From positions 29,388,001-29,452,000 of the forward strand of contig OZ281496.1 of NCBI GenBank assembly GCA_965637545.1: 64,000 bases of DNA, written 5' to 3'. The position numbers were made by a program, and so were the translations under genes. The notes below the pieces were generated by a model. It had not been told where the DNA came from and made no database searches. It saw only the letters and a program-made list of their open reading frames with translations. Origin of the DNA: Phallusia mammillata (lineage: Eukaryota). Positions 13,982 to 48,900 of this stretch are shown here, piece after piece. Positions within the stretch are counted from its first letter, which is position 1. The number at the start of each line of letters is the position of its first letter.

Positions 13982-16514
13982 ATGGTTCACATGCTACATG
14001 TTTACGACGAGGAACCCGGGAAACAGCCACTGAGCAACAATAGTAAGTCGAATAAGCAGCGTTTGGCAAAGTTCTTTGTTCTAGCTCGCGCGACTTGACA
14101 ATGGCTACGGCCCTTCTTACTGATGCTTATGTGTTTTAAACCGTAATACAGTGCAATGTGATGTCTGTAAGTGATTAAAAATATATTGTTTATGCAATTG
14201 CTATAGTGTATTAAAAAAAACACGCAGCTTGCATAGGAATATAGGATAGCAATGCACACATGTGAATATATAAATAGCTTTATAGGATATTAGATACTGT
14301 TTGTATCCAATTAACAATTGTATTTAACTGTTGTGTAGGTCAGATTGCGAACGAATATTCGTTTCCATCAGTGCAGTCAACCCCTGCAGAAGAGTATCTA
14401 CAATTGCAATCGTGCGACGCGAAAAGCAACATGCATGCTGACGACAACAAAACCTCCTACACACATGACGCGTTCAACTACGCAATGCAGACCGATTACT
14501 CGCCTGAACCTTGTACACCAATGGAGGCTGACAGCTCTGAATTTCCATCTGGCAATTTCTGCAACTTAAACACAAGAAGCAATACCACAGTAGAGCAAAT
14601 CTTGTTCAGTCCGCCTAAGGTTGAGCACCAATGCCCCACAGTAGAGCAAATTAATCCGATGGAAGTCTTGTTCGGTCCGCCAAAGGTTGCGCGCCAGTAC
14701 TCGATCTCATCGGTAATGGAAGTAATTGCAAATGATGCAATAAACGGTGCAAATACGAACACACCTCAACTGGTCAAAACGCCCAGTGCAATCACTCGAC
14801 CTATCAACATCAAAAAGAACGTTCAAATGGGCACATACGATGAACGCAGAGCAACACCTACCACATGTCGAGTGTCAAACACCCAGCCATCATCGGATTT
14901 GCCTTATGCTTGTTCACCAGCCCATTCAAACAGCCCGATGCCAATCCCCTTCACTGGATACAGAAACCTCCCAGATACGCCTCAATCTTCACAATTCGAA
15001 GTGCAGAGCAACGCATCAAATTCGTTCAACGAAAATAACAACGTTGGATCTTTCGGTAAGTAGTTTTTAGCAAAAAAAGACATCGCTAGTGTGTAAGTTT
15101 CGTTTTGACACATAAAACGCTCTCCATTGTCTTTTGGTGATTAGTTTTTAGCAAAAATGCTATTGCCGTACATAACACGCGTTCCTATGTCATAATGTTG
15201 CTTTAAGCACATTATTACGAAAATTACATAAATTAGCAATTGTAGCCCCGTAAATTTTTAAAGTGTATAACCGCGGCATTTAATTTGCGAAAAATAGTCG
15301 CAATCAAAAATAGCTACAAATTTTTTTTTGGCGTTCTGCACTTTTCCTGTGCTTCCAACTGTTTATAAATTAGGTCGCTTAAAAACTAACCTTTTTAGGT
15401 ATTAGTTTCGCAAAATGTCCGACGCAAACCGTTTTAACGAATTTTTACAATGTATTGCATCATCACGTGCGATCTGCATGGCGTCCGCCATTTTGAAAAA
15501 TCGCGACAATTTTTTCGGTAGTCTGGACGCTATCGACGAGACAAAAGCCTTCCATGCACGTGACAAAACGCAGTCGGCTTGCCAGGACCTGCCCGTAGCT
15601 CGCGTAGCTCGCGTAGCCGTCGTTTCGACGCGACAGGTGTTTGTGTGTAACATCGATGCAGCTTCCAAATCGTTATATTCCCAACAGTTAGACGAGCAGC
15701 GCGGTTTCTCGTATCGAGTGACAACCCTCGTCGTTTTTCGCGCGAAAATAACTTGTCTGGACACGCCCGCAGATTAAAGCGCCAGTGAGTCGATTAATTG
15801 CGCCACACTTGGTAGTTGTTAGCACCACACGCGACGTTGTTTGTAAATATTGCGAATCGGTTTTGTCAATACCGCAAATTAAACGTTTTATCTTTTCTTA
15901 ACTCCACAGGTTCAACGACCGATAATGCGAACCAGGCATTTCGTACAACTTGCCACGGGATCCAAGAAACCACGAACAGGCTGCAGACGAACACGGGCAA
16001 TTGGTGGGGCGCGTTGGGCAGCCAGTTTGGCTCCGCGCCAACCTTTGAAACCGCGTTGCCAGTTCACAACAAACTGACCAACGTCTCATCATGTCCTGAT
16101 TTCGACACAAACAACGAAGTTTTTGGCGACGGTTCTGATGTTTTCCAACAATCGCCGCAATATTCAGGCCGCGCCATGTCGGCGTCATCACCTCGGCCTT
16201 TCTCTGGCTCCGGATTCGATTTCCAGGCAACAGCTTCCGGTTTCGAACTTCAGGAAGTCACACCGGAAGCTGTCACCAACGATATCTCTGACGACATCTA
16301 CAGTCAAGTAGACAGAGCGGACCGACGTCGTATCCGCAACAATCTAGCGTGCAGGGCTTCCCGACATCGTCGCAAACTCCGAAAAATTAACAACGAACGG
16401 CTAGCAGCAGGACTGGAGACGCAAAACCAGGAGTTGAGGGAGAGAATCCGACAACTGGAATCGGAATGCCAAGTTACCAGGGATACGGTGCTGCGTCGGA
16501 TGAGCGAAACGTAG
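13982..16514 (+). CDS. Orphan bZIP transcription factor A (C/EBP superfamily, CHOP/Xrp1-like), ~460 aa
   Basis: Exons 13982-14042, 14339-15055, 15910-16514 joined in phases 1/1 (1383 nt). S/T/N/P-rich low-complexity N-terminus; C-terminal bZIP RRRIRNNLACRASRHRRK..LETQNQELRERIRQLESECQVTRDTVLRRM. The first coding exon and start codon are less certain than exons 2-3. Confidence 0.85.
15454..15768. promoter_or_regulatory. Intronic regulatory module in bZIP-A intron 2 (CARE, E-box, YY1, p53-family site)
   Basis: ATTGCATCA (C/EBP-ATF response element) at 15454-15462, adjacent CACGTG, CCGCCATTTT (YY1) near 15485, and TAACTTGTCT GGACACGCCC (two abutting p53-type decamers, one mismatch each) at 15749-15768. 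Motif matches only. Confidence 0.5.
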
Positions 16515-30500: not shown

Positions 30501-32187
30501 GAGTTTGACGACCAATCGCAGGCATGTCCATATTTGGAGAGCCGTTTTGGCGGATTATTTTTTCGCATTTCGCGGGAAAACAGGTTACAATGTGATTACG
30601 ACACGGTCATATGTTGTTTCGTATTCGATTACGTCACCATTTCTTTCGCACGAGATCTCTGGGTGCTCTGGATTTGTAACAGCTACAATTAAGGCCGACG
30701 CCCAAGTATGCGGCAAAATTGGAAGGAACATTTTTATGGAAAACAAAACCACGAAACTTACAGTGGTTGAATGTAGCCTTAGCGAAACTATTACATTAGG
30801 ACTAGTATTTATGATTAATCAAATAAAGAAGCTGTGTTTATTTAAGAGTTTTAACACCAAAATGTCTTACTAAAATGAAGTGCTCATACACTATTCTTAA
30901 TACAGAATAACCGCCAAACTAAAATGCCTAATTATTATGCGATACATCCACCAGTTTTTTTCCCTATTACTGCCATATGATTTGGATCAAACCTAAATAA
31001 TTTGTGTTCAAATATTACTTGGACCAGTTTAAGTGATACTTAACAAACTCGCCTATGACGTAAAAATCGAACAATAAAAAACGTCGTGACCAGACAACAG
31101 ATGCGACAGTTTTTCTTGCCGTGCGAAGTAATTAAGCATTACGTAAGCCCCAACCTTGCGATTCTGACAACTTAGTGGCGCAATGATTTCGACGTTTCAC
31201 AAACTTGGTGGAGAGTTTTATGGGTGCAATAAAACTGTTGTCCCATATTGACAGTGTACACATTGCGTAAAATGTGGTATTGTTAACCCCTTTAAGGTTA
31301 AAATTTCATTATTTCGGCATATTTTACGAAAAGATCTTGCAACCCACGGCTTTACAAATGCCACTAAAGTATTTTGGGTTAGGTATAGAAGCATAAATTA
31401 AGTGCCAGTTGCTGAAACGCCTGAATAATAAAGCATGCCGCTTTTTACGTCTATTTAGGCCGTCCGTAACTTATGAAAAGGTCCGTGCATATCCAAAGTG
31501 CCCTCAGTTTGGGTTATTTAGTAATCTGTAGCATTTTGTTATATCTGTTGATAAGGATTACCTATTTGCAAAATAACACAGGTAAGGTACAAATATTTAC
31601 ACTTTATTTCAACTTTTTTTGCGATATGTTACGAGCTTCAAGGGGCATTGCAATACAAATTACAAAGGGCGGGGAAAAAGACACGAACGAAAACAAGGCT
31701 ATTTTTTGTAGCAGGATTTTCGTTTGATATTTTTCACAATTTTTTTTCAATTTTTTTGCAATGACACAGGGCTGTACACACAACGCAAAAACACTCGGAA
31801 CTTTTCAACTCTCAAACATTTCCTAAAAAGGACCAACGTCACTGAAACTATGGCAACAGAAGAATGCTGCCGATATAAAACAAGAGGGTAGAAAATTTAG
31901 GCCAGTAGAAAAAAGAATTTAACTAAACCAGTAAATTAAAACATTCAAAGAATCCAATAAATAATGACAATTTCAGCTATGCAAACCAACTTTCTATCTT
32001 ATGTTGTAAGACGTTAAAAATGCAAATAGTGAAAACTATTGCATTTCATACAATGGTCTGTAAAAGTAAAGACAGTTTGACTATATTCATATTAAAAGTC
32101 AAACATAATAATCAATCCATACAACAGAGGAACTTTATGAAAACATCACACATCTCCAAAAGGTCGGTCCACAAATTAATTGGACAG

Positions 32188-33783
32188 TCATTTTTTGCTT
32201 TTTCCAGTCATCTCAGTCAGGAGTGTAGCTCTCGTCTCCTTTACTTCTTGCTCCAGTTCAACAATTTTCTTGCGCAAGAGCTCGTTATCATCAGTCAGCT
32301 CCTGCATCTTCTCCGCTGCCTCATCGCGCTGCACTTTGCGCTTCTTTCGCGACTCCCGACAAGCTTCGTTGTTCTTACTCCTCTTCCTGATGTAGGAGCT
32401 TGTTCTTTTCATCTTCGGGGTTTCAATGCTCGCTGAAGTCGCTGGCTCTTCTTTAGTCAAATCTACGACGACATTTTGAGGCACTTCTGGTTGCATGTCA
32501 CCAATTTCAATGGTTGAAAGGTCACTTTGGTCGACCACAATTTCCACAGCCTGTAAAGATAACAAATTATTATTTAGGTATCAAAGCTATAACCCTAATG
32601 TAGTCAAACAATTGCTGCTGCTCTTACATGTGGTAGGACTGGAATCTGCTGAAGTACGGATTCCAAGGTGAGGCTGTCCTCTCTAACCATCTCTTGTTGG
32701 ACCACAGAAGTTGTGTAGACATCAGTGACAACCATATTCATTTGGCATTCGACATCACTCACTGTGGTCTGTGTGCAGACACTTTCATCTGATGTTGTGT
32801 TGACTTGGTTATTGTTGTTGTTGTCATTGGTTTCTGCAGTGTCTGTTAAAGATTAGTTTGTTAAATCTCGGAAGTGGGTTAAAAATAAGATATTTATAAA
32901 GCACAAATGGTTGCGTACCTGAACAGTGTGTGATGACTGGTGCATCCGTGAAGTATGGCTCCAAGTTGACGGGATAAGAGCTGTACAAAGTTGCATCCTC
33001 TGAAGCGGCTCTGAGCCGGTTGTTAAGCGGAGGAGAGGGAACAAATTCACCTCCCCAGGACACATTACGATGCCGTGCCAAAGAGCTACTGGGAAGCTCT
33101 GCATGTGTGAAGGAAGGAGAAGGATGAGCAATGTGTGCATCATCATCCAAGAAGGGAGTTGGGATGGGCGACTCTTCATGGTATTCTTCTTCATTGTCAT
33201 TTGGGATTGGACCCAAAACTTCAAGTACCATGCTCAATGATGACTGCCTTTCCATCTCGGGGATGGAGTGGTATGCACTCTTTTGCTTCAAGAGTTCTGG
33301 GAATTCTTGCATGGAATGTTTAGGGGTTGAAGGATTAGGTGAAGTCAAAGGATAGTCACAGCTATCAAGCTGGCTGTATGGGGATTGTGCCCACAAGCTG
33401 TTGGTGCTGGGCGCTGGAGAGCATTTGTTTTCAATGTCTCTGCAATAGTCAGTTTCAGCGTAACCAACATTGTCATTGGACACAAGAGCGTCAAGAGTTT
33501 CCATGTCATTTGTCCGGTTCCAGGTCATGTTATAGGCATCCGGGATTTCTGTAATGTTTAAAAGAGCCAACATTAAAACCATGTCTACTATAACCAGAGT
33601 CTTATGTTTGGAATGTTTTTTACCTGACAGGTCGCTACCCACAGAAATAGGTAGGTCTGGGAAGCACTCCCCCAAAGTCACCTCTGGCTGGGGGCTCCCG
33701 GGGCTCTGGGGCAATTGCCCCGCCCCTGGGTTTTCCTCTCTGAGCAATGTTTCTGTCTGCATGATGCAAGTCGAACTGAGCAT
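32188..33783 (-). CDS. Orphan bZIP transcription factor B (C/EBP superfamily, CHOP/Xrp1-like), ~455 aa
   Basis: Exons (minus) 33624-33783, 32919-33548, 32628-32842, 32188-32550, phases 1/1/0, 1368 nt. Acidic S/P-rich N-terminus; bZIP YIRKRSKNNEACRESRKKRK..MQELTDDNELLRKKIVELEQEVKETRATLLTEM. Start is ATG 33783 or the in-frame ATG 33762. Confidence 0.88.
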
Positions 33784-34049
33784 TGGATTGTGAAGCAACC
33801 ATTCTGAAATAGGCAAATATAAGTTTTAATACACATTCTGCAATGATATAATCTTACAATTAGACTAAGTCCCCAATTAGAAACAAAACGTTTGACGTAC
33901 CTCACAAAAGCAAGTTCTATACACACATTCATCCACAAATGCAATAAGTTATACTGTTTTTAATGCACAAGGACTCAGGTCCCAACAAGTTAATTCACAA
34001 AAGCAACAAAACATGTACCAGCGCTGCGAGGAACGCGATCGTTGATCAT
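33635..34049 (-). other. Spliced 5' leader of bZIP-B with uORFs (uORF1 11 aa; overlapping out-of-frame uORF2 66 aa; 3-aa mini-uORF)
   Basis: Exon 1 ends at 34019 (donor GTACAT), exon 2 is 33901-33953, exon 3 starts at 33803. uORF1 ATG 34049 = MINDRVPRSAV*. uORF2 ATG 33932 (second in-frame ATG at 33802) stops at 33635-33637, past the main ATG. Mini-uORF ATG TGT GTA TAG at 33917-33928. Confidence 0.65.
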
Positions 34050-34166
34050 GTTCTGTGCTTTGTTTTCTTTTTGCAACAATAACAAACTTTCACGCGGATT
34101 GCTCTCTGAAGGTCTGCTCGGCTTAGCGACTGTCAAGTTGTGGGGCTAGCGCGGCGCGAACGTTTA

Positions 34167-34311
34167 TATTTATAGCCTGGCTTCGAGAGGGTAAAAACGT
34201 TTCTCAAACGTTTCGGGGCACTTTTTTCGCGTCACTTCTCTCGTTTCTAAGCACGCCCGGACATGTCCGAGCACGTTTGGCAAGGAAAAAGCATCATGTG
34301 ATGTGACGTCA
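34167..34311 (-). promoter_or_regulatory. bZIP-B proximal promoter: TATA box, triple p53-family half-site array, CRE
   Basis: TATAAATA on the minus strand at 34167-34174; AAGCACGCCC GGACATGTCC GAGCACGTTT at 34249-34278 (three abutting RRRCWWGYYY-like decamers, the central one perfect); TGACGTCA at 34304-34311. Confidence 0.65.
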
Positions 34312-36009
34312 AAAGCGACAACGCGACGCTTTCGGTACAATAACAACCCGGGAAGACCCCAGCCGGTAGAGCTGGCGCGTTGCTCACATTCCTAACAACG
34401 AATGCAATGACTTAATACCACGAAATTTGCACCCAAATATGCCAATCAGTTAACCTTAGCCGGTCGCAGTAAGTAAGTTTACCCGTCTTAAAGCGGTTAA
34501 CAATGGCAGAAATTTCGGGACAGTGCGAAGGACACCGCCCACGCCACTCCCGCCGGCGTCGCCGGGTGCAGTTGCACCAAAACAAGCCGCGATTGCGCAA
34601 CATGCGGCCTCATGGGAGCAATACTTGACCGGCGAAATAACTGCGGCTAAGGTGAAGCGAGCGACAATAACAAACTACCGGTAAAAACCGGACTTCTCCA
34701 GTTTGGCTGGACTTGAATTTTAGCGCTCAGGAAAGCGATTACGGGTGTCAACAATCACTTGGTTATTTATATGTCATGTTAACGCCTTATTACAGTTTTG
34801 TCATTGCATTTGCGTCCAACATACCGACAAAAATCTTTACACAAAATGGAAACGTTATGAATTTTAAGTTGAAAAACTTGAAACAGATTATTTATAACAC
34901 CAAAAACCTAAGATTGCGTTTGTTCTTAACACTAAACCCATTTTACCCCATGCAAACCATCACAAATCTCAAAACAGCTCACAGCAGCCATACAAGTTCA
35001 AACAATGCACAAATTTAGTAAAAAAAAACAACCTTTCACTTGCTCACCTGACAAACTTAGCCATTTGGCTTTTTGAGTTTTCTCGAAATGACCCCTTGGG
35101 GTTTCGGAACACTCCAGCAACGCCTAAGCGCGCTGATAGCGATTCATCTTTTTTGTGGGATTATAAAGTTGACAAAAACAGGACTTAGGAACTTGTAAAG
35201 ATTGAGAGTTCATAAAACAGTGCCAACCCATTGAAGTAAACAAGGAATCTGAGTGTAAAATCGTGCTTGACCAGTCGCAAATAGAAGGTGTTGTAGTAAT
35301 AATTGTCTCAGTAATTTGAAAATCAGAAGCAGCAAATGGGTGTGAAGAAGCCTCAGAAATCATCGGAAAAATCTCAAAATCAAGCAAATATACTGATGAC
35401 CAGGCGACCAGCTATTAGGACAGCCTCCCAGAAATTCTTTTCTCCAAATGGTGGTTTGCAAAAATTGTTAAGACCCAAGGTTGACAACAAAATTAACTAC
35501 TGATAACCAGCTTTAATACAGATATTTATTTGCTTTTTTTGTGTAATCTATCAATGCAAAATATACACTTCAATAAACACCAATTGTCCAACCAAAGCTA
35601 TTTTCATTATATATCTCCATTTCATAAAGTCTAAAGGTAATCTAGCTTACCCTAACACAAGTCAAGTTATTGGATGCTTTCTGTTATGTATCTATTTCTA
35701 TATTAACACAAACTGATTATATTTCTTTAGACGCAACTTGCCAGTAAAAGCTATTGTTTAAACACTGACAAGCGACAACCACAGAAAAACCACGTTTAAA
35801 ATTGTACAAGGGAAAACTTACAGGCTAATCAACTACCTTGTACAATCATTAGACCTGGTAGCCTTCACAACTTAACCAGCTCATAAACAATGGCATTCTA
35901 TAACCAACTTAAACTACATGTAGTTCCTGTACTGCTCGAAATACCCATGCCCAGACTGAACTGATGACGCCACGCTAAACGCTCAGTGACTATATGCCTG
36001 CGAAACGGA

Positions 36010-36039: not shown

Positions 36040-37830
36040 CGGGCATCACGGGACTAGCCAAGGTGACTTTGCGCGTGCTGAGCAGCTTTAAAGACACGTC
36101 TTAAAACGGAATTTTACAAGTAACACTAATTTTTTTCTCCCGGGTTTGCTAATAACCAATTTCTTGGGTTTGCAATGCTGCGGTTAAGAGTATAAATTTC
36201 CAATCCAATTTAACATTTACGCGCCTGGGGGCGGGTGATCGCATTTTTGCAATTTACAGCTTACTTCATTGGTTTTTATAAGACGAGAGGTTACGTCCAA
36301 AAATATTTACAGCTAAGCGTAAAACGTATCAAGCACGCAACACAACAGAGACCCATTTTATACATTAACGTTAATACGTAAAGTGACATTACAGATAAAC
36401 TTTTTTTAATAAATCTACTGTTTCCACTCATGCCAGGTCATGGTTGTTTCGCTAATTTTCGATAAACAAGTATCGTTAGATAACGACAGCATTCATGATA
36501 AGCGCAGCCCAAATTTTGCAAGTCATTCCTGTGCGAGCCGGCCGCCATCTTGAAAACAAGCTATCGTTTCTCCCAGCGAAAAAAAAAGCACCGCTTAGCA
36601 ACCAGCAGGTAAAACTGAAAACCACATTTCACGAGCTGTGCATTGGAGAAAGTCAGAATAAGAAAAGAAATTCCTTCCACAACTACAAATTATTGGTCCA
36701 ATAGTTTTTCTAGTGGGACAATAACCAGAAAAACACACAAATATTTTCTTAGTACATCGTTTCACATTCACAAACCACACATTCCACATGCAAAGGGCAG
36801 GTTTCACACATTTTATGCAAAGCAAAATATGCTCTGTGGATTTTCAAAAATGTCATCGAAAATTGCAATCAAAGGGCTGTTTTAAATGAGTCGTCCATTG
36901 TGACGAATTACAGGATAACCTAGGATTTCGTCAACTTTTCATAGTTACCTGAATTGTGAAAAGTTTCGACAGACTCAAAATTGGAAATGTTGATCAAAGA
37001 CGAATTCGATGTAGGAAAAATTTCGCTCTCTGTAAAATGGTCAGATTGAGCAAAAAGTCCCACCAACTTACCGCCATGACACACAATTATATTGTTAAAA
37101 GTTGTTTTTTAAACTTACCACCGTTTTTAAGGTTGGAGAAAATTGTTTTCTTTCCTGTACGCCTTGTTGAATCCAAGTTTCACGCAGAAATTCCGACTTT
37201 TAGCTTCACTCTTCAACAGCAAGCAAGGCCACTAACTCTAATTGAGCTAGCAACCAGTAAAAACAAAACTTATTTCGATCTCGACGCTTGTCGAAGACCG
37301 ATACTAACGAAAACGCTTGTAAGTTATCCAGCGATTCTAATGCACTTGCCTTTAGACAAGAATATAGCGCGCTCTTTCCGTAGCTTGTTGTAAGACTTCT
37401 GTCAAATGTCGATGTGATATTGCGCCACGGTTGCGCAACAGTTTTAGCCTGTCACACGGGTGTTCCCCGGCATTTTCCGGCGTCGCCATTGGATGCCGTA
37501 ATCACGTGGGTCGACCGGCCTATAGGAAGTGAGCAAACTGAAACTCCCCCAAGCGTAACTCGGTCAACACGGTCGTGAGGGCAACCGATCTTTACACAGC
37601 CAGACATAAGTTCTAAATTCGGATATTCCGTGCAATGAAAATTGACGCCGCATTTGATGACGAAATACGATATATGCTGTCCTCACAATACAGGCAAACA
37701 TGGATGTGGTCTACTTATCATTAGCTCTTCAATAGTACATCAAAAATGCCCAAACCTTCTTAGTATTTTCGATTTTTACTCAATACATTTAATCAATTCA
37801 AAACACTTCAACTATACCAACAGTTTAACC

Positions 37831-45900: not shown

Positions 45901-48900
45901 CACCGCGGTGCTATGATACATCGTCCCGGGCGAGGCTTTGATGACTACGAGTATCTGACGTCATCCTGGTGAGTGGCCAGTGAAACTGCGTTGTGCGGAA
46001 ATAAAGGAATTAGAAATTGTTAGAGGGATGACACCGATTGAGGCGACCTGCTGCGAAGGCACCGGGCATCTATTGTTTAGTGACAGTTCGTAATGCGCTT
46101 TGGCTCCAAGATGCTGCCAGCCTGCGGAGTGTTTACCTACTGTTGCACGCGAACAAAACGTTGCCCAAAAGTCGTGGAATATTTTAGGTTCAGTTCCCTT
46201 AGTTCTTTTGAAAAATCTTAACATACTGAAATTTTGTCATAAACATAAATAATAGATGAATATACGCTAGTGTAGCATTTTTTGTTGATATCAAGCAGAG
46301 GTATTTACACAATTACCAAGTTTAACAAAATCGATAAAAAAGAAATGCAGCATGAATAAAACAGCAAAAACTGTTAAACCCGGTCCCAACAAAAATAAAA
46401 GCAAAAAATATTAAATTGTACTTAATAAGGATCATTTTTCAAAACGAAAAGCAGAATATCAGCAAGGTCAAATGGAAGAAACATTGGCGTAAATTGTTAA
46501 AAACTTGCCCTGTGCACCAACCGGCGATCAGCATTGGAATGCGCCATGGCATTTGGCCTCGATGTCCACTCTGTAAATGTAAACATTAGCCAAGGTTCGA
46601 GGCATAACGGATGTATGGGGATTAGCTACGCTGAAATCCGACAACACAACACCCATCGTTGATGGTTTGCTTTCAGGCTTGGTACACTTGCCATAATTAA
46701 TGCGGCTCGGCACAACTGTTCATCCGCCCTACAACGTTACTTAGCGGGATGCTAGTTGACTTGATGCCTGCTCCGTCCGCTGGTTAAGCTCGGACGATAT
46801 TGTTTCTGCAACTATTGGTGAAAGTTAAATCAATAAATGCAAAGTTGTGATCAATATTGTGTTTACTGATTTTTCTCGTGCCGGTTTTGTGGAAATCAGT
46901 GTTTTTAACCGCACAAATCTAATCAATTTTATTAGCCGAGCAAATGTCACAAAAAATCCTCAACATTAAAGGCGTTTCTTTATTGTATAAATAGCTGAAG
47001 GTCAAGCGTGCATTATGGGCTAAAGTTTATCACCGGAAACATACAGTAAATGGCAAAAATTAATTTAAAACACAAACCGACCAAAAGATCACGTGGCATT
47101 TTAAAATAAAGCAGAAAATATGTTTAATGCAACTTGTTTAGGCCTTTATAATGTAGACACCAAGGGTGCCACGTGTCAGACATGTCACTGGCCTGGCAGC
47201 TGCCACAAAGCAACTGGCACCAAACGCCGCTCACCTGTCAGTAAGTCAACCGAGTTTACAATGCACGTTATAAAATATACACATACATATATGGACGGAC
47301 GTATATCTCATCGCAGCGACAAAGGAAGTTGTCTCAGGCCAACAGGAAAAGCATTTCTTCGGCCGTAAACAATTACCACTGGCGCCCGCACAGATCCCAC
47401 CACCGACGGGCAAACTTAGGAGAAAACAAGACGTGGTTATGAGTGCGCGCATGGAGTTAATAACCTACCCTGGGGGACACACGAAGTCAGGATGTTGCAT
47501 TCAACGAGTGTCCCTTGGCGCCTGGTTCTGTGCAGAGGCGGAGTCCTTTAATGAGGAGCCAGCGAAAATCTCGGGCCTTCATAGAAGCATTACTCCGACG
47601 CAATTTTGATAATGATGCTTGCGAGGCCGTTTGGGACTTTTCCTCGCATTCGTGCTTTTTGATTTCTCGACCTCTGGGACAATTGTACGTGTTGTTGTTT
47701 GTATTGTGCGCCCAATCATCGCTCATCACAGAAATCCACATTTCCTGGCCGACTCAGCAACCATTTTGTACATTGAAACACATGTTGCTTTATTGTTATG
47801 CGGATTGGAAACAATCAGCGTTTATAGAGGGTACCACGTGTTTTGTGGTCGGTTTCGAACCCGTGTCGAAAAACTTCTAAAAGACAACCAACCGATTTGT
47901 GCTAAAATATGACTTTTTTCGTTTTTTTTTCTGCTCGGTCAACTTTTATTTGTAGATTAGGTACTTCTTATTTCTAACTCAATGCGTTGTTGTTTGGTCC
48001 CCTTAATTAATCTCTGTCAAATTTAGCTTCTTATGACCGAAATGTGCGAAAAAATCGTTCCATTGCCCAATTATTGTGAAACAATTACTTACCGAAAAAA
48101 AGTGAACATGAGATACCGAAGACATCAATTAATTACAATTTCAGGTGCAACAAAAAAATATATTTTGCTATGCTGTGGAGTTTGATTTTATCAGGAAACC
48201 CGTGTCGCTAATCAGAGTTCAAATCTTTTGTGTAAATCCTTCTTCTTTCTTGGGTCTAATATGCGATGTACCTGGGGTGCTTTCAAATGGAACAAATAAG
48301 TTTTTCAATGCCAAAAACACAAATGGCTACATATGCACCCGATCTGTCTTCCATAATCGATAAGCGCTCTTTAGAACATGATGTATGCATTTGTGTCTGT
48401 GCGCCGCGAGAACGACACCAAAATTTACGATTCCCTCAAAACTTGTACGCCAGATCGGGCCAAACGAAAAGAACATGCTGCTCAACGTCGTTAATTCTTG
48501 TGTCGTCTTTTCCCTGACAGAAGACGCTAGCTCATTCCCCATCTGTTGTGGCTGACTTCGCTGGGCCGTGCATACGGGGTGTGGGACGCAAATTATGCTC
48601 CTCTATTGTTCGTCGCTTTGTCGCCAGCCATTGTCCCATCACTATCTCTGATCGCGCTGCGGGAACCCTCTCTCCGCGCGCGTCTACGAGCTGCTGTTGC
48701 AGTTAGGCCACGCGCTCGCTTGCTTCTTGCTTTGAACGCGCGTGTCCTACAATTAGTAGCAACAATAGTGCGTTCCTTGATGTGGAAAAGTTGAACAACA
48801 CGGGTAGCAATTAGTAACAATCGCTTTAAACAAATATTGGCTGATGTACTTGTTTGTTTTTCACCTGTTTCCGATTTTAGGAGCATCTGGCGTTAAATGA

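Follow-up and report, generated by a model that had tools for sequence, protein, structure and literature searches.

What controls the translation of a gene when a uORF (upstream open reading frame) in a different frame runs across both of its candidate start codons? The question is raised by a basic leucine zipper (bZIP) gene of the ascidian Phallusia mammillata, located in a 64,000-nt stretch of contig OZ281496.1 (hereafter the window, which contains zero N). A sequence-only reading of the window had proposed an ATF4-style leader for this gene, in which a short uORF and a long overlapping uORF downstream of a TATA box would place the protein under the integrated stress response. The gene is on the minus strand, and window coordinates below refer to that strand unless stated otherwise. 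Its spliced model encodes 455 amino acids that are identical to UniProt A0A6F9DFC5 ('Transcription factor protein', Phallusia mammillata), and all three introns within the coding sequence are confirmed by RNA contigs.

The overlapping uORF, which we call the gate uORF, opens at ATG 33802, bases 2-4 of exon 2, in the optimal context AGAATGG (A at -3, G at +4). The A at -3 comes from the AG that closes each upstream exon, and the context of the AUG is thus formed at the splice junction. The gate frame is out of frame with both candidate main starts, ATG 33783 and ATG 33762, covers both and ends 148 nt past the former; the short form of the protein probably begins at ATG 33762. In-frame AUGs in two alternative first exons extend the gate to 61 codons (ATG 35064, exon E1b) or 66 codons (ATG 33932, exon E1c). 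The 66-codon version, read through a 33901/33803 junction to its end at 33635 and out of frame with 33783 and 33762, is the one drawn in the sequence-only reading and is borne out by the sequence. The individual elements listed there, a TATA box (TATAAATA, 34174-34167), ATG 34049, a mini-uORF at 33928-33917, ATG 33932 and ATG 33802, are likewise all present.

Exon 2 was compared at seven loci: Phallusia, a close relative (L001), Clavelina lepadiformis (L002), Styela clava (L004), and L003, L005 and L006, which are ENA assemblies taken as tunicate. Phlebobranchia, Aplousobranchia and Stolidobranchia are all represented among the named species, and Ciona intestinalis and Styela clava also contribute protein isoforms. 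At all seven loci the exon is 171-183 nt long and starts (A/G)ATGGT, with the gate AUG at bases 2-4, followed by 49-56 open codons and a stop 8-23 nt before the exon-2 donor. A main-frame Met lies 37-55 nt downstream of the gate AUG in each case. Conservation of this frame in orthologues had been suggested as a check on the original proposal, and the frame is kept 7/7. Exon-2 identity between lineages is merely 50-60%, and the gate uORF peptides have only their first two or three residues in common, the rest not being conserved. When main-frame codons were shuffled, an open second frame of the observed length arose with P of 0.0015-0.085 per locus (Fisher combined P over five lineages = 5.6e-7). 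The base completing the gate ATG, ahead of TGG, is always A, while the main-frame codon to which it belongs varies (E, G, R or stop). Because this A is invariant and the frame open while codons and peptide vary, the comparison indicates that the gate AUG and its open frame are under selection and the peptide is not. That a factor of C/EBP type keeps the gate over three ascidian orders, even as the gate peptide varies freely, provides strong comparative evidence that selection maintains the act of translation.

Genomic loci for the Ciona and Styela X2 isoforms and Phallusia transcripts sought by exact protein gave no record, and Ciona enters the comparison through its proteins. A transcript from a distant relative (L007, 526 aa) has a 56-nt leader without an upstream AUG and was uninformative. 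At the Styela locus, the gate uORF closes with three stops in a row, TAG TGA TAG (L004 10305-10313).

The leaders upstream of exon 2 were reconstructed from Logan contigs of four RNA-like runs (X1, X4, X9 and X17) from four studies, in which word shares of 0.65-0.77 fit spliced RNA. Both boundaries of exon 2, the acceptor (33803) and the donor (33624), are present in 4/4 runs, and at least three alternative first exons, E1a, E1b and E1c, are each spliced to acceptor 33803. Distal exon E1b forms the dominant upstream junction, 33803/35048, with contig depths of 387 (X1), 24.5 (X4) and 38.8 (X17); a TATA-like TATATAA lies upstream of it at 35613-35607. E1a was found through a loose contig end at 33808 in X1 and X9 that was placed at 36954 in the window. 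The proximal, TATA-driven exon E1c is joined to exon 2 by the 33803/33901 junction, which was detected in X1 only (depth 23.5, ∼6% of the main depth); the exon makes up ∼6-13% of contig depth where present and is absent from two runs. An X17 contig covers 33901-34092 at depth 5.1, and coverage in that run is zero over 34106-34975, which fits a separate start at the proximal TATA promoter. The TATA-proximal exon of the sequence-only reading thus exists, as does its 33901/33803 junction, but it belongs to a minor isoform, the main leader being the one spliced 35048/33803. The 65-nt intron (34018-33954) that had been proposed within this exon, with junction 34019/33953, is retained in both covering contigs (33901-35077 and 33901-34092). 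The transcripts are cis-spliced and contain the upstream AUGs, and are not seen to begin downstream of 33802; trans-splicing or downstream starts, named in the original proposal as what would undo it, are not what the contigs show.

Three further observations concern the RNA. Run X1 carries an 8-nt deletion polymorphism at 34094 in the proximal exon, and a low-depth transcribed stretch (35772-36000, depth 7.6) that continues beyond the examined region. Across the gene, run X17 differs from the window by six single-base differences and one inserted T.

A second uORF, uORF-b, is located in the distal exon, and E1b is recognisable in Clavelina, L005 and L006 as well as in Phallusia. The uORF-b stop falls inside the conserved motif CGCGCTTAGGC; ..RA-TAG closes the frame in each of the four species, inside CG(C/T)GCTTAGGC. 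All AUGs before this stop are in one frame in 4/4 species, none being out of frame inside the Phallusia uORF-b. The upstream AUGs are mostly in weak context, as is the earliest in 4/4 species, and the last AUG, 5-7 codons ahead of the stop, has A at -3 in 4/4. From the stop to the splice junction the spacer measures 76, 76, 77 and 79 nt in the four species, placing the gate AUG 77-80 nt past the uORF-b stop, and AUGs within the spacer, where present, are always in the gate frame. RNAalifold on the four spacers gave 14 pairs with zero compensatory changes, and spacer conservation looks like conservation of primary sequence rather than of an RNA fold. Stop-codon readthrough was considered, as uORF-b shares the bZIP frame with the TAG alone between them. 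Differences in the Phallusia-Clavelina spacer alignment, counted by hand, number 7/8/5 at codon positions 1/2/3; this spread has no coding signature, and readthrough was therefore dropped.

Two short blocks in this exon are identical in Phallusia and Clavelina. The 15-mer ATTTCGAGAAAACTC (window 35075-35089, minus; L002 8678-8692) is preserved despite diverged flanks and includes a TTCnnGAA core. The block TTCAATGGGTTGGCA (window 35221-35235, minus; L002 8541-8555) opens a 32-35-codon 'MGWH' version of uORF-b, and synonymous changes later in the MGWH frame (in codons for His, Pro and Ser) hint that the peptide is under some constraint.

The short uORF1 that the sequence-only reading had assigned to ATG 34049 has a different history. 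Protein isoforms X1 of Ciona and Styela exceed the corresponding X2 isoforms by an N-terminal peptide (MIKDR.. and ..MIDQR.., respectively) that leads on into the main frame of exon 2. At six of the seven loci a donor G/GTA.. follows the matching ATG at a distance of 31, 34, 37, 46, 76 and 34 nt, always 1 mod 3 and hence in frame; at L005 the distance is 62 nt and a TGA arises at the junction. In Phallusia, a 34019 to 33803 splice would read MINDRVPRSA-EWLLHNP.. into the bZIP ORF, and there is no AUG within 150 nt upstream of ATG 34049. ATG 34049 is the counterpart of the start codon of the longer isoform that is annotated for Ciona and Styela. The proximal donor of Phallusia and L001 is weak (GTACAT). 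A second, conserved donor (GTACGT, 33901) is the one found in RNA, and L001 preserves the frame through the supposed 65-nt intron. In the Phallusia/L001 lineage, a shift to this second donor would thus have left the ancestral start codon opening a uORF of 19-20 codons. The uORF1 of the original proposal accordingly survives in its 19-codon unspliced form and not in the 11-aa form that required removal of the 65 nt, and in other ascidians its ATG starts a longer protein. The locus illustrates how a start codon can be converted into a uORF by a splice-donor shift.

L001, Clavelina and L003 retain both the TATA promoter block and the proximal exon. A block upstream of the proximal TATA is also conserved (window 34240-34330, minus; L001 60-170; L002 9560-9640; L003 9120-9190) and contains a TGACGT(C/A)-type site resembling a cAMP response element (CRE), E-box-like CACATGATG / TCACGTGA, and a GGACATGTCC-like palindrome that is p53-like.

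Table 1. Positions of the bZIP gene, its first exons and its upstream reading frames in the window
Feature	Position	Strand	Description
bZIP coding region	33783-32188	minus	4 exons: 33783-33624, 33548-32919, 32842-32628, 32550-32188
Exon 2	33624..33803	minus	180 nt; common to all mRNA forms; holds gate AUG and both candidate main AUGs
Gate uORF ('uORF2')	33635..33802	minus	ATG 33802; 55 codons; TAG 33637-33635, 11 nt before exon-2 donor
Annotated main ATG	33781..33783	minus	weak context (C at -3, C at +4); Met not conserved in other species
Second in-frame main ATG	33760..33762	minus	A at -3; conserved Met of C-x-M motif
First exon E1a, 3' part	36949..37029	minus	spliced to 33803; sole 5' exon seen in X9
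Distal first exon E1b	35048 to at least 35549	minus	main 5' exon in 3/4 runs; contigs end 35548/35549 with no unmatched letters
uORF-b	35124..35363	minus	in-frame AUGs 35363, 35231, 35213, 35147 give 79, 35, 29, 7 codons; TAG 35126-35124
Spacer, uORF-b stop to splice junction	35048..35123	minus	76 nt; includes ATG 35064 in gate frame
Proximal TATA-driven exon E1c, long form	33901..34140	minus	minor isoform; 5' end ∼34140, estimated from TATA 34174-34167
'uORF1' of the sequence-only reading	33990..34049	minus	19 codons when exon continues to 33901; 20 codons in L001
Weak conserved donor CTG/GTACAT	34017..34019	minus	splicing to 33803 would set ATG 34049 in bZIP frame
ATG 33932 and mini-uORF	33917..33932	minus	E1c only; ATG 33932 in gate frame (66 codons); 3-codon mini-uORF 33928-33917; both conserved in L001

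The ATF4/Xrp1-like layout of the distal leader appears real at the level of sequence: what stands of the original proposal is the overlapping out-of-frame uORF together with a conserved upstream uORF, although not by way of the leader that was drawn. The best overall explanation is a gate uORF working with delayed reinitiation of the ATF4/Xrp1 kind, a model that we regard as evenly poised between right and wrong. Under this model the act of translating the gate uORF would be what matters and would keep bZIP synthesis low. Ribosomes finishing the short 3' version of uORF-b would go on scanning; with plentiful ternary complex they would reinitiate at the gate AUG, and with eIF2-alpha phosphorylated some would bypass it and start at 33783 or 33762. 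Induction of the bZIP by the integrated stress response would follow by analogy with the known systems. The proximal TATA promoter would constitute a second route, yielding in other ascidians a uORF-free mRNA for a protein with an N-terminal extension; the Phallusia gene, by splicing from the 33901 donor, would make ATG 34049 the start of a 19-codon uORF.

Several points weigh against delayed reinitiation at the gate. The gate AUG precedes the main AUG by merely 19-40 nt in Phallusia, a caveat already attached to the original proposal, and by 37-55 nt in the other species, a distance that gives delayed reinitiation little scope for telling the AUGs apart. The upstream AUGs of uORF-b yield 29-79 codons, which should disfavour reinitiation, and a GC-rich sequence lies directly 3' of the stop of uORF-b. 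Transcripts with E1a may be without any uORF besides the gate, in which case a two-uORF logic would not apply to all mRNAs, and ∼10 kb of upstream sequence in Styela and L003 yielded no E1b. The contigs are also imprecise for isoform ratios and transcription start sites, and may miss rare junctions (34019/33803) or a 16-nt spliced-leader form.

The short gap between the AUGs is also one of the observations that would suit a constitutive gate, one that represses without responding to eIF2-alpha and may trigger nonsense-mediated decay, since the gate uORF ends upstream of three exon junctions. Output would then be set by the choice of promoter and donor, with gated mRNAs from the distal promoter and an ungated mRNA for the longer protein from the proximal promoter and its short donor. 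First exons do vary by run (X9 has E1a alone, X4 and X17 have E1b, and X1 has all three), the annotations of Ciona and Styela include an extended isoform free of uORFs that is in frame at 6/7 loci, and the Xrp1 isoform switch in cell competition offers a precedent (PMC13268129). Such control leaves the conserved uORF-b, the discipline of its frame and the 76-79-nt spacer unexplained, and the proximal exon in Phallusia RNA still has uORFs, the 34019/33803 junction not being seen in the contigs of the four runs. We consider it possible but doubtful.

It could also be argued that the gate AUG and frame are a by-product of the main-frame extension E-W-L-L-x-N-P, as the motif GAATGGTTGCT codes for the conserved EWLL of the extended isoform and the changes between Phallusia and Clavelina right after GAATGGTTGCT affect the main frame more mildly than the uORF frame. 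The ATG-completing base, however, stays A though its codon shifts, and a conserved motif cannot yield ∼50 stop-free second-frame codons in an exon of such low identity. The related idea that the overlap is dual coding for a functional small protein meets uORF peptides that are alike only at their very beginning; taken together, by-product or dual coding is improbable. Most improbable of all is the regulated leader in its original form, namely a TATA leader from which the 65-nt intron is removed to leave an 11-codon uORF1 ahead of the 66-codon uORF2. Its TATA block and exon are conserved in three other loci and its 33901/33803 junction exists, but the exon is minor, both covering contigs keep the 65 nt, and the reading frame through that supposed intron is maintained in L001.

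Delayed reinitiation at the gate is best judged beside the systems on which it is modelled. Overlapping out-of-frame uORFs are a signature of ATF4-type stress control, and cases outside ATF4 with evolutionary support are few. The bZIP leader resembles those of ATF4 and ATF5 in having an upstream uORF ahead of a final one that overlaps the main start in another frame, and in the conserved spacing from the first-uORF stop to the inhibitory AUG. The uORFs are part of mature mRNA in Phallusia, where contigs contain the 35048/33803 junction and span 35048-35549, and the out-of-frame overlap of the last uORF with the main start is found at 7/7 loci. The last uORF of ATF4 has 59 codons, akin to the 49-61 codons here, and its upstream uORF has ∼3 codons, compared with nested versions of 5-79 codons here. 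The bZIP differs from ATF4/ATF5 in that the protein is of C/EBP type, the gate AUG stands 19-55 nt before the main AUG, and this AUG is at an exon junction common to three alternative first exons. Delayed reinitiation is the established model of ATF4 leader control (PMC9971878), and a uORF-based model has been proposed for Xrp1 (PMC8514241, PMC13268129). Xrp1 is a stress-linked bZIP with several 5' isoforms, some with long leaders containing uORF1 and a repressive overlapping out-of-frame uORF2, others without uORFs; part of a uORF in one species is main ORF in others, the uORFs comprise 124 and 288 codons, with conservation of the peptide of uORF2 (PMC8514241, PMC13268129). The Phallusia gene shares with Xrp1 the multiple 5' isoforms, the overlapping out-of-frame uORF and the exchange between uORF and main ORF across species; the Xrp1 uORFs are much longer, and its conserved uORF2 peptide contrasts with the unconserved gate peptide. 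As to isoform-dependent control, Phallusia RNA contains three gated 5' exons, and the ungated isoform is annotated in Ciona and Styela, the Phallusia sequence being in frame for it with the junction unseen.

CHOP (DDIT3) is controlled by bypass of a single inhibitory uORF of 105 nt (PMC9971878, PMC8167367). It is likewise a C/EBP-related bZIP, and its uORF is near the 32-35-codon MGWH version of uORF-b in length; that uORF ends short of the main start, however, and there is no second, overlapping one. Several in-frame AUGs in poor context are present in the CHOP uORF. C/EBP alpha and beta have an out-of-frame uORF near the first of several in-frame main AUGs that controls isoform choice; it stops a few nucleotides short of the main AUG and directs ribosomes to downstream AUGs. 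These are the closest bZIP type, and the Phallusia gene shares both the nearby out-of-frame uORF and the multiple in-frame main AUGs, whereas its uORF extends ∼150 nt into the coding region, over both AUGs. The type of control is itself known; what this locus adds is that a shared splice junction forms the gate AUG and that a start codon has become a uORF. By analogy, the gene might be a tunicate-wide stress bZIP, comparable in function to Xrp1 of flies or CHOP of vertebrates, and have two routes of control: distal gated mRNAs read by the integrated stress response, and a proximal TATA promoter with CRE-like and p53-like blocks for an ungated extended protein, the donor shift in the Phallusia family being recent. 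We put this broader proposal forward tentatively, as rather unlikely in its entirety. Ascidian embryos take injected or electroporated reporters, and the gate AUG, the upstream uORF and the spacer are each directly testable in them.

The protein itself has a bZIP_2 domain (PF07716) in the last coding exon (39.6 bits; cutoff 22.3). In PDB searches its nearest solved structures were C/EBP beta and alpha (profile, best E 2e-9), followed by NFIL3. In PDB 1CI6 the C/EBP beta chain matches at E 3e-8, whereas the ATF4 chain gives no match even at E up to 10; by these matches the bZIP is of C/EBP type and therefore not an ATF4 orthologue. Word-based protein searches reached only Phallusia, Clavelina and L001 fragments, and the full profile search reached Ciona and Styela. 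Only 23 proteins fell below E 1e-10 in the profile search, and those traced to source are tunicate or unlabelled fragments. A literature search for an 'orphan bZIP' in Ciona gave nothing.

A search of the window for a second copy of the exon-2 motif returned a sole match at 47756 with one mismatch, which is at chance level. The window also contains a diverged paralogue, bZIP-A (13982-16505, plus strand), oriented tail to tail with the bZIP gene. The two have a central ..RQ.S.S.V.EV.. motif in common and are 39% identical in the bZIP domain. The first coding exon of bZIP-A opens ATGGTT, with that ATG in frame with its main ORF, and the paralogue is without an exon-2-type acceptor. The 3' untranslated region of the bZIP gene is ∼590 nt long (31600-32187), with RNA contigs stopping at 31600 and 31614.

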